63,936 bases of DNA, taken from Octopus bimaculoides. Its lineage: Eukaryota. The stretch lies in contig NC_068987.1 in NCBI RefSeq assembly GCF_001194135.2, positions 12,410,992 through 12,474,927 on the forward strand, given 5' to 3'. The notes under the pieces were generated by a model that searched no databases, was not told where the DNA came from, and saw only the letters and a program-made list of their open reading frames with translations. Each line of letters begins with the position of its first letter. Positions within the stretch are counted from its first letter, which is position 1. Both the position numbers and the translations under genes were made by a program. Shown here in pieces: positions 27,801 through 58,403 of the stretch.

Positions 27801-30800
27801 CAGAATTTCATCCGTCTTCATATTCAGAGTTCAAATTCTGGTGAGGTCAACTTTGCCTTTCATGCATTTGGGGGTCTATAAAATAAGTACCAGTCAAACA
27901 GTGGGGTCAATGTAATCAACTTGCTCCTCCCTTGAAATTGCTGGCCTTGTGCCAAAATTTGAATGCACTCTGTGTTATTGTTTTTTTTTTATATTTTTCA
28001 TGGTTAAATCATGGCAAAAGTTTTGCATTACATAGTATTATATAGAATATATGTGTTTATGTATGAATTTATATACATGTGTATCATCATCATCATCATC
28101 ATCGTTTAACGTCCGCTTTCCATGCTAGCATGGGTTGGACGATTTGACTGAGGACTGGTGAAACCGGATGGCAACACCAGGCTCCAGTCTGATTTGGCAG
28201 AGTTTCTACAGCTGGATGCCCTTCCTAACGCCAACCACTCAGAGAGTGTAGTGGGTGCACACATACATATATATGTATATATATGTATGTATATANNNNN
28301 NNNNNNNNNNNNNNNNNNNNNNNNNNNNNNNNNNNNNNNNNNNNNNNNNNNNNNNNNNNNNNNNNNNNNNNNNNNNNNNNNNNNNNNNNNNNNNNNNNNN
28401 NNNNNNNNNNNNNNNNNNNNNNNNNNNNNNNNNNNNNNNNNNNNGTGTGTGTGTGTGTGTATGTGTGTATATCATGCTAGCATGGAAGGTGGATGTTTAA
28501 CGATGATGATGATGATGATGATGTTGATGTAATATACTTGCATATATATATATGTATGTATATTACATGATTCATGTATGTATGTGTATATATATATATA
28601 TATATATATATATATATATATACATACATACACACACACACACACACACACACACACACACACACACACATGTATGTAATATATGTGTGTGTGTGTGTGT
28701 GTATGCATGTATGTATGATGTATGTAGGGATATATAGATGTATGTGTATGTACGCATGAATGTATGTATGAATATATATATATATATATATATATATGTA
28801 CATACATTCTTATGTATGTAAGTATGTATGTTTGATTAACGTAAGCTGACATGTAATCAGTCATTTTTTCTTGAGTGTTCAGATAAAATGCATGAAGTGA
28901 ATCCTTTAGATGACATATTCTCTTTTCTGTGGTATTTCAAAGGTGGAAACTAAAGAGAATGATGGATTGTGTCTGATAGCAGGAGGCCTTGATGGTAATT
29001 TTGATAATACAAGTGATGTGGCTAGATGTGCCCTTGCTCTTGTGAATAGCAATGATACCAGCACTGACAAAGGATTTGATGAGACCCTCACTTTTGAAAT
29101 TGGTAAGTTGGCATTTTAAAGGAATCAGTGTCAAAATCTGTTAGTGGAATATATGAGGGACTGCTGAAAAGTTCCTGGCTTTGGGTAAAAGAAAATACAG
29201 GAGGATCAGTTAATTATGATTTTATTCAGAATATTCCCCTCTCAGGTTCACACACTTGTTGCAACCGTCCTTCAGTTTTTCTAAACCCTGTAAAAGAACT
29301 CAGATGGTTGGGCCTCCAACCAGGCCTTTCGCAATACCCTTAACGCCAGAAACTTTTCAGCAACCCCTCATACACACACACACACACACACACACACACA
29401 CACACATACCTACATGCACACACTCACACACACACTCATACACACATACGCACACACACTCAAACACACTCACTCACACACACATATACATACATACACA
29501 AACATACCGACACACACATACACAAACACACTCACTCACAAACACACATGTACATACACACACACACACAAACACATTCACTCACACACACAAACACATT
29601 CACTCACACACACACACATACACACACACACAAACACACTCGAACACACACATACAGACACACACACACTCACACACATATACACAAACACACTCACTCA
29701 CACCCACATATATATGCATACACAGGTAATCAAATGAAAGGAAGTAAAACTTAGCACCTGTTGTTGGAGTTATTAGTACAAATAACAAATTGATTCTTAA
29801 TTGCTTTCTTACCTTTACTCTTTACTCTTTATTCTTTACTCTTTACTTGCTTCAGTAACTTCACCGCAGCCATGCTGGAGCACTGCCCTTAGTCGAGCAA
29901 ATTGACCCTGGGACTTATTCTTTGTAAGCCTTCTACTTATTCTATCAGGCTTTTTTGCCGGACAGCTAAGCGACGGGCACATAAACACACCAGCATCGGT
30001 TGTCAAGGAATGCTAGGGGAACAAACACAGACACACAAACATACACACACACACATATATACATATATACGACAGGCTTCTTGCAGTTACCGTCTACCAA
30101 ATCTACTTACAAGGCTTTGGTAGGCCCGAGGCTATAGTAGAAGACACTTGCCCAAGGTGCCACACAGTGGGACTGAACTTGGAACCATGTGGCTGGGAAG
30201 CAAGCTACTTACCACACAGCCACTCCTGCACTTGAGCACATTTATTTCATTAAACCATGTTTTCTTTGCTTTTCTTTCCTCTCTCTCTTGTCAGGCATGG
30301 ACTTTGGAAGTGTTGTTGCCGGAGTTGTAGGTTTAAAGAATTACCAATATTGTTTATTTGGGGATGTTGTAAATACTGCTTCAAGAATGGACCACAATAG
30401 CCTCGTGAGTATGAACTATGCAACATTTTAGCAAGGATATAACAAATAGTAATAAACTAAATGATTCTACCTTTGTTTCAATGATGATTTTTCAGTTTTA
30501 CGTAGAAATGAATTAGCTGTTCATTGTATGGTTGCATGGTTAATAATGGTTGCATTGTAATCTTTGCCATATGCTCTATTTCGTAAAATCATAAAAACTA
30601 TAAAATTTAATAACAGATTTCTAATAAACCCATTTGCTTATTCTTACAGCAAGGGAGAATTCAAGTTACTCAACAGTGTAAACAAAGACTCGATCGAAAT
30701 GAATTTGTTACGTGTCCGAGAGGAACAATACGAGTAAAGGTAAGTTAAATGCTTCAGTTAATTTTTCTAGTGGTTGATCAAAAAAATTACCTGTTAATTA

Positions 30801-58403: not shown

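Follow-up and report, generated by a model that had tools for sequence, protein, structure and literature searches.

How does a gene for a small, predicted secreted protein come to lie antisense inside the largest intron of a signaling enzyme gene, and why does it stay there? This question is raised by a stretch of Octopus bimaculoides DNA of 63,936 nucleotides (contig NC_068987.1, positions 12,410,992 to 12,474,927 of the forward strand; hereafter, the window). A first reading, made from the sequence alone (the sequence-only reading), described a gene with a fibrinogen-related (FBG) domain nested on the opposite strand within the giant last intron of a predicted O2-sensing guanylate cyclase, and proposed that the two are functionally coupled. 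Here, we refer to the cyclase gene as the host and to the FBG gene as the guest. We found the nest to be intact in the octopus and common to three animal phyla, i.e., Mollusca, Brachiopoda and Nemertea, and below we consider how old it is, why it may have lasted, and what the two proteins are likely to be.

We reconstructed the host gene by an exhaustive search of GT/AG pairs reproducing the 615-amino-acid (aa) protein, which gave one solution per junction: ten coding exons on the forward strand, spanning 18190-58403, with GT-AG introns throughout (Table 1). The spliced translation is identical to the O. bimaculoides RefSeq model XP_014771097.1, and the exons are 100% identical to those of the RefSeq isoforms XP_052825201 (630 aa), XP_014771092 (625 aa) and XP_052825202 (620 aa). 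Introns 1 to 9 measure 1926, 1510, 679, 2391, 423, 2450, 1192, 245 and 27,550 bp, respectively, exactly reproducing the initial description of one intron of 27,550 bp alongside eight of 245-2,450 bp. Intron 9 is in phase 0 and separates Lys578 (…RVK) from Gly579 (GKG…), as had been read from the split RVK/GKG motif, and the acceptor of exon 10 at 58290 reads tttag/GGCAAAGGT.

The guest lies wholly within intron 9 on the reverse strand, and its three coding exons likewise have a single GT-AG solution. They encode an intact product of 360 aa, whose stop codon is located 2,231 bp from cyclase exon 9, in line with the intact, multi-exon antisense gene first noticed about 2.2 kb from that exon. It follows from this geometry, as had been pointed out, that a full-length cyclase mRNA can be made only by transcription across the guest.

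Table 1. Host and guest features in the window, with the assembly gap inside the guest (position 1 is the first letter of the window)
Feature	Position	Strand	Content
Cyclase exon 1	18190-18822	+	H-NOX/HNOB domain; His106, Y135-S137-R139, Tyr145
Cyclase exon 2	20749-20907	+	HNOBA
Cyclase exon 3	22418-22566	+	HNOBA
Cyclase exon 4	23246-23375	+	HNOBA / coiled-coil start
Cyclase exon 5	25767-25913	+	coiled coil / catalytic domain start
Cyclase exon 6	26337-26492	+	first metal-binding Asp replaced by Ser417
Cyclase exon 7	28943-29102	+	KVETKENDG: Glu460, Asp465
Cyclase exon 8	30295-30404	+	Cys531, Asn538, Arg542
Cyclase exon 9	30650-30739	+	ends …RGTIRVK, then gtaagt
Cyclase intron 9	30740-58289	+	host intron, phase 0, 27,550 bp as assembled
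Cyclase exon 10	58290-58403	+	ends …EIVG, then TAA at 58401-58403
FBG coding exon 1	40552-40338	-	signal-peptide-like N-terminus, conserved N-terminal motif
FBG coding exon 2	38628-38510	-
FBG coding exon 3	33719-32971	-	complete Fibrinogen_C domain, C-terminal tail, stop
Assembly gap in FBG intron 2	37920-38343		exon-free; flanks collinear with O. sinensis

The same arrangement recurs in other animals. The public annotation of O. sinensis places the gene of a 359-aa 'fibrinogen-like protein 1' antisense within a 97.9-kb gene named 'soluble guanylate cyclase 88E', and that of Argonauta hians has the same antisense nesting, with the guest stop 1.1 kb from the …IQIK exon. The nesting is therefore already visible in these public gene models, and what is new here is its age; our search of the literature on nested genes and microsynteny, guanylate cyclase 88E, fibrinogen and cephalopods returned no paper on this arrangement. 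Beyond cephalopods, we found antisense FBG genes within a 795-aa HNOB/HNOBA/cyclase gene of the abalone Haliotis cracherodii (369 aa), within a 680-aa cyclase gene of the brachiopod Lingula anatina (332 aa), and within an 8.9-kb, 684-aa cyclase gene of the nemertean Tubulanus polymorphus (339 aa). In the mussel Sinanodonta, an FBG gene stands tail-to-tail with the …VNIK exon, its stop 2.3 kb away. No guest was called in the annotation of the 109-kb 89Db-like gene of the spider Argiope.

Exon mapping placed the host intron at the same phase-0 junction, …[V/I]K/GKG…TYWL, in the two Octopus species, Haliotis, Lingula and Tubulanus; in each, the donor GT immediately follows the Lys codon and the acceptor AG immediately precedes the Gly codon. 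The comparison of synteny across species that the sequence-only reading had suggested thus found the same intron and guest in the latter three genera, and nesting confined to a single species, which together with uncorrelated expression would have removed the proposed functional link, was set aside by its presence in three phyla. For Argonauta and Sinanodonta we have the upstream half of the junction only; no GKG..TYWL exon was detected in 10 kb of flanking sequence around these two loci or the first Haliotis locus, and the whole Haliotis gene showed it. The host intron and guest span, respectively, 27,550 bp and 7.6 kb (coding sequence) in O. bimaculoides, 47,964 bp (gap-free) and 11.2 kb in O. 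sinensis, 28,776 bp and 7.4 kb in Haliotis, 11,834 bp and 5.6 kb in Lingula, and 3,257 bp and 1.9 kb in Tubulanus. In every species examined, the 3' end of the guest adjoins the upstream host exon, at a distance of 157 bp to ~5 kb.

Are these the same two genes throughout? In neighbor-joining trees of FBG domains and of cyclases (200 bootstraps), the nested guests, their mollusc relatives and a fibrinogen-related domain of Lineus formed one FBG clade (173/200 bootstraps), leaving outside it other bivalve and annelid FBG sequences, amphioxus ANGPT2 and fibroleukin, and fish FGL1 and MFAP4. The guest clade is further marked by an N-terminal motif, C..M.[FY]R.L...LQNEH.C, which is present in the Lingula guest, degenerate in the Tubulanus guest and absent from all deuterostome matches, and the FBG domain is encoded by a single terminal exon in cephalopods, Lingula and Tubulanus. 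The hosts, for their part, formed a lophotrochozoan clade in 136 of the 200 bootstraps. Since the guests are orthologous, and the intron, its phase and the orientation are identical, independent insertion is not credible. These comparisons suggest that the nest was probably already present in the last ancestor shared by molluscs, brachiopods and nemerteans, and would hence be more than 500 million years old; this ancestor lived in the Ediacaran to early Cambrian.

Why, then, has the nest persisted? Structural entrapment is the simplest account, because an inversion or translocation that freed the guest would destroy the host. We infer that the guest entered the host intron in or before the mollusc-brachiopod-nemertean ancestor and has stayed since, that its retention is most likely structural, the host being disrupted by any rearrangement that moved the pair apart, and that selection otherwise maintains host and guest separately, for what each of them does, with each probably run from its own promoter. 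The giant size of the intron would reflect the guest itself, the region upstream of it and the repeats that have built up, as the compact Tubulanus nest illustrates, where the guest fills 1.9 kb of a 3.3-kb intron. Among classes of gene overlap, moreover, antiparallel nested pairs are the best conserved (PMC2330155). We therefore regard entrapment with independent regulation as a reasonably likely explanation, and the data require no functional coupling.

Several points weigh against it. The case for entrapment is one of parsimony, and retention in three phyla, including the heavily rearranged genomes of cephalopods, would likewise be expected if selection acted on co-regulation. Furthermore, the non-coding comparison described below covered one distant species pair and part of the intron. 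Finally, in the limpet Patella caerulea, the FBG orthologue SNE40_001716, which carries the N-terminal motif, and the host-clade cyclase SNE40_001727 (597 aa, without the GKG exon) lie on the same chromosome with locus tags 11 apart, a spacing that could reflect either a broken nest or an annotation artefact.

It is possible, if on balance unlikely, that the nest was kept by selection for co-regulation, through shared intronic enhancers or through antisense interference giving mutually exclusive expression. The same intron and orientation in Mollusca, Brachiopoda and Nemertea would fit such selection, as would the constant proximity of the guest's 3' end to the upstream host exon; among human FBG nests, expression is inversely correlated for ANGPTL3/DOCK7 and ANGPTL8/DOCK6 and positively for ANGPT2/MCPH1 (PMC6371847). 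However, across human FBG host-guest pairs the correlations are inverse, positive or none (PMC6371847), so that the class predicts nothing, and nested pairs are expected to last without selection, given that their breakage breaks the host. In addition, when we compared Octopus and Argonauta by blastn over ~10 kb of the guest's upstream region and over the spacer between the guest and exon 9, no conserved non-coding block was found, only exons and repeats resembling short interspersed nuclear elements (SINEs).

More doubtful still is the reading of the pair as a regulatory unit that selection has maintained in lophotrochozoans, in which host transcription through the guest, or shared enhancers, would tie a secreted FBG factor to oxygen-sensing cells; this coupling, in place of entrapment, would then explain a survival of >500 million years, even in the scrambled cephalopod genome. 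The link to a closed circulation, made in the sequence-only reading, loses ground: the pair is older than cephalopods, since abalone, Lingula, the nemertean and, in tail-to-tail arrangement, the mussel have it too, and it is present in open-circulation animals. As to origin, fibrinogen-related families are large in lophotrochozoans, notably in molluscs and brachiopods, which counts toward repeated insertion of FBG genes, lineage by lineage, into this one long intron. FBG genes also recur as antisense guests in vertebrate introns (PMC6371847). Such convergence is nevertheless very improbable, for besides the shared clade, private motif, single terminal FBG exon and identical intron, phase and orientation described above, the Tubulanus intron, at only 3.3 kb, is not a large target. 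The chance that the giant intron is unreal, the exon at 58290-58403 coming from a paralogue or a misjoin, is negligible despite nine N-gaps in the intron and a 2015 model (A0A0L8HNV8) that stops at …RVKVS, as all gap-flanking blocks are collinear with a gap-free O. sinensis chromosome, each of these two species has one such exon at the locus, RefSeq isoforms of O. bimaculoides, O. sinensis and O. vulgaris join exons 9 and 10, a related 648-aa frame reads through …EIKGKGMMPTYWL, and four other genera have a guest-containing intron interrupting this junction.

The collinearity was established by aligning the window to the orthologous O. sinensis locus (107,887 bp, free of N). At every gap, unique blocks on either side lie on one diagonal, with the O. 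sinensis order and orientation kept, and the collinear stretch runs in that locus from exon 9 at 46019 to exon 10 at 93984. The 15 N-gaps of the window are confined to introns, with no exon touched and no reading frame spanning any of them; apart from the gap in FBG intron 2 (Table 1), those of intron 9 lie in the host intron only, outside the FBG gene. Their N counts understate the missing sequence: the segment 49335-51922 (gaps 49779-51920) amounts to 2.6 kb, as against 9.5 kb in O. sinensis. Since several gaps stand for more sequence than their N count, the 27,550 bp of intron 9 is a minimum estimate. We observed TA/CA-type microsatellites or homopolymer-like runs at gap edges (e.g., 28296-28444, 37920-38343, 49779-50291 and 57453-57838), and these repeats fit simple-repeat gaps, not scaffold joins of unrelated contigs.

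An exon encoding G[KR]G..T[YF][WF]L occurs once in the window (58290) and once in the 108-kb O. sinensis locus; exon 10 is therefore not the exon of a paralogue, and together with the gap collinearity this excludes the misjoined scaffold or paralogue that had been named as a possible refutation. The frame reading through the junction, 648 aa long and 54% identical to the host cyclase, is the only one in an assembled contig of 2.4 kb, which is most likely the transcript of a relative. In the O. sinensis host gene, no further genes besides the guest are called in the annotation.

We next turn to the host protein, in which Pfam recognizes HNOB (E=4e-47), HNOBA (residues 203-394, E=2e-43) and Guanylate_cyc (residues 406-589, E=1e-36). 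We mapped its residues against Manduca and human beta1 structures. In the alignment, His106 corresponds to the proximal His105 of beta1, Y135/S137/R139 to the YxSxR haem-propionate motif, and Tyr145 to the position of Manduca beta1 Ile145 (141 in Tt H-NOX numbering; R139+6). A Tyr at this position is linked to O2 binding, and the NO-selective beta1 has Ile (PMC1435932). The distal Tyr was found in all 59 atypical sequences, comprising 22/22 of the host clade, 18/18 arthropod 89D and 19/19 88E proteins. These features place the host in the atypical, O2-sensitive-type group of soluble guanylate cyclases, making the designation 'predicted O2-sensing' reasonable at the family level.

A correction is needed, however, as regards self-sufficiency. 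None of the 22 host-clade proteins has the first metal-binding Asp (D1), which gives way to Ser417 in cephalopods and to Tyr in other lophotrochozoans, with Gly at this position in beta1; the E, C, N and R residues are kept, and the octopus catalytic domain retains Asp465, Glu460, Cys531, Asn538 and Arg542. Because one metal-binding Asp is lost, in a beta-like half-site pattern, the host would need a partner, and it is probably an obligate heterodimer subunit, inactive alone, rather than a self-sufficient sensor-cyclase. In Drosophila, Gyc-89Da and Gyc-89Db form heterodimeric O2 sensors with Gyc-88E (PMC9075734, PMC11568450), and we infer that the host is most likely the beta-like half of a comparable heterodimer with an 88E-type subunit. 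It shares with Gyc-89Da/Gyc-89Db the H-NOX-HNOBA-cyclase order, the Tyr at the beta1-Ile145 position, the loss of a metal-binding Asp and the 89D side of the cyclase tree, but differs in which residues are lost: in arthropod 89D proteins D1 is changed to Glu and D2 to Gln/Arg, whereas in lophotrochozoans D1 is changed to Tyr (Ser in cephalopods) and D2 is kept.

The label '88E' in current annotations is at odds with this picture. The octopus motifs FCS417ITQYS, ETKEND465G and KNYQYCLFG stand against the canonical 88E motifs FSDVVGFT, ETIGDAYM and MPRYCLFG, which Lineus, Haliotis asinina and other species keep in their 88E-type proteins, and both Lineus longissimus and Haliotis asinina have a distinct 88E-type protein alongside the host-clade protein. 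The cyclase tree, in turn, separates the lophotrochozoan hosts, arthropod 89D and a rotifer protein from the 88E-type and tardigrade proteins in 200/200 bootstraps. We accordingly rejected the host as an 88E orthologue, as it lacks the canonical Asp motifs and falls on the opposite side of this split. Within the former side, the hosts and arthropod 89D proteins form a joint clade in 74/200 bootstraps, or in 200/200 with the rotifer included, which makes one-to-one orthology tentative. Judged by these characters, the automatically assigned name '88E' is incorrect at the subfamily level, and the host is best described as an 89D-type subunit minus one catalytic aspartate.

Within the host clade, the cephalopod orthologues form a long branch with strongly diverged catalytic motifs (encoded in exons 6-8, window 26337-30404); other lophotrochozoan orthologues read FSYLIGF, ETLGDAVYM and PQYCLFGDTV at these motifs. 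The rotifer protein has ETKAD, plus another motif, in common with the cephalopod orthologues, by convergence or shared ancestry.

The guest protein carries a complete Fibrinogen_C domain (PF00147, residues 110-327, profile positions 2-221 of 221, E=3e-72) with the FSTxDxDND calcium-site motif. Its N-terminus resembles a signal peptide, in that small residues come after a hydrophobic core, and only ~85 residues, containing the conserved Cys motif, separate this segment from the FBG domain. After …MKIKP there is a charged C-terminal tail, which, like the N-terminal motif, is specific to the lophotrochozoan orthogroup. The angiopoietin/ficolin-like character first ascribed to the guest was not borne out. 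Its matches to solved structures are nearly tied between angiopoietin-1/2, FGL1, MFAP4, ANGPTL6 and tenascin-R (E 4e-53 to 4e-49), and the 360-aa product, with its short linker, contains neither a long coiled coil nor collagen-like Gly-X-Y repeats. We thus rejected an angiopoietin/ANGPTL identity, given the missing coiled coil, the tied structure scores and the placement of amphioxus ANGPT2 and fish FGL1 outside the guest clade, and a ficolin identity, given the missing collagen repeats. The FBG phylogeny that had been proposed as a check yielded a lophotrochozoan orthogroup of the guest's own, but no affinity to angiopoietin, FGL1 or MFAP4. Compared with the FGL1, MFAP4 and angiopoietin structures (7tz2, 8un7, 4jzc and 4epu; E 4e-53 to 8e-51), the guest has the full Fibrinogen_C domain and FSTxDxDND in common, but shows no family preference and has its own N-terminal motif and charged tail. 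The guest is, as far as its sequence features indicate, a generic short fibrinogen-related protein of this orthogroup, predicted to be secreted.

How unusual is such a nest? Anciently conserved protein-coding nests are few, and the cyclase/FBG pair adds a three-phylum example that is independently annotated. Among vertebrates, ANGPTL7 in MTOR is an antisense nest of this general kind. ANGPT2/MCPH1, ANGPTL3/DOCK7, ANGPTL8/DOCK6, ANGPTL1/RALGPS2 and ANGPTL2/RALGPS1 have likewise been described as genes-within-genes (PMC6371847). Vertebrate ANGPT/ANGPTL nests resemble the octopus one in having an FBG gene antisense in an intron of a larger host, yet they are separate events, as their hosts are not cyclases and the octopus guest is not orthologous to theirs and has no long coiled coil. 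Of the gene overlaps in one survey, only three were common to ecdysozoans and deuterostomes, and each was an antiparallel nest (PMC2330155). A close parallel, and the classic case of a conserved nest, is that of synapsin and TIMP, in which TIMP lies antisense in a synapsin intron in animals ranging from cnidarians and Drosophila to human (PMC2825198). In both systems, the gene of a small secreted protein is antisense in one intron of a neuronal-type host, its position is kept across phyla, and no functional link between the two proteins is proven. The systems differ in their gene families, in the range of the octopus-type nest, shown in Mollusca, Brachiopoda and Nemertea only, and in that no guest duplications were seen in the latter. 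Here, the host introns range from 3.3 to 48 kb, offering a natural series for weighing entrapment against regulatory coupling, and the guests define a lophotrochozoan fibrinogen-related orthogroup.

The 3' end of the host gene held a further complexity. The TAA at 58401-58403 overlaps a consensus donor, GG/GTAAGT (58399-58404), and the 625- and 630-aa RefSeq isoforms use this donor after 58399 to join a further exon ending in ISKKLRRKTI. The C-terminus is thus set at one site, ending in …EIVG and a stop in the short isoforms, versus …EIVGISKKLRRKTI in the long ones. Intron 9 is accordingly the last intron, as originally described, in the 615- and 620-aa isoforms, which are minor ones, but not in the longer two. 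The terminal ISKKLRRKTI exon is absent from the window; in O. sinensis it is found 8.7 kb downstream of exon 10, and, from collinearity, that of O. bimaculoides should lie ~2 kb beyond the window end.

The giant intron also appears to have misled gene prediction. The 2015 O. bimaculoides model (532 aa) reads into intron 9 and does not include exon 10. The Sinanodonta cyclase model, labeled 'partial', has a spurious, unrelated terminal exon (24601-24783 of its locus), and the Acanthosepion cyclase model diverges already within the exon preceding the host intron, in the catalytic domain. This recurrent 3' loss looks like a systematic annotation error tied to the guest-bearing intron, which would account for cyclase models truncated at …VK (the old O. 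bimaculoides model and Sinanodonta) or earlier (Acanthosepion).

As for the rest of the window, its G+C content is 35%, and microsatellites are plentiful. Rfam and tRNA scans of the whole window gave no match, and a Pfam scan of ten selected other open reading frames, six of them within intron 9, gave none above the curated cut-off. A SINE-like dispersed repeat of ~400 bp occurs in both orientations, at 19933-20312, 29824-30229, 39771-40183, 56187-56541, 59056-59480, 62335-62577 and elsewhere; ARAGORN detected no tRNA-like gene in it. Many copies are present in the O. sinensis locus as well, and a ~100-bp core is common to Argonauta. Lastly, ~265 bp upstream of the true exon 1, at 17916-17978 (+), we observed a decayed copy of the exon-1 acceptor and first 21 codons, HSKMYVLLFLCIESIAVKEYA, which is 76% identical and is soon followed by a stop codon.

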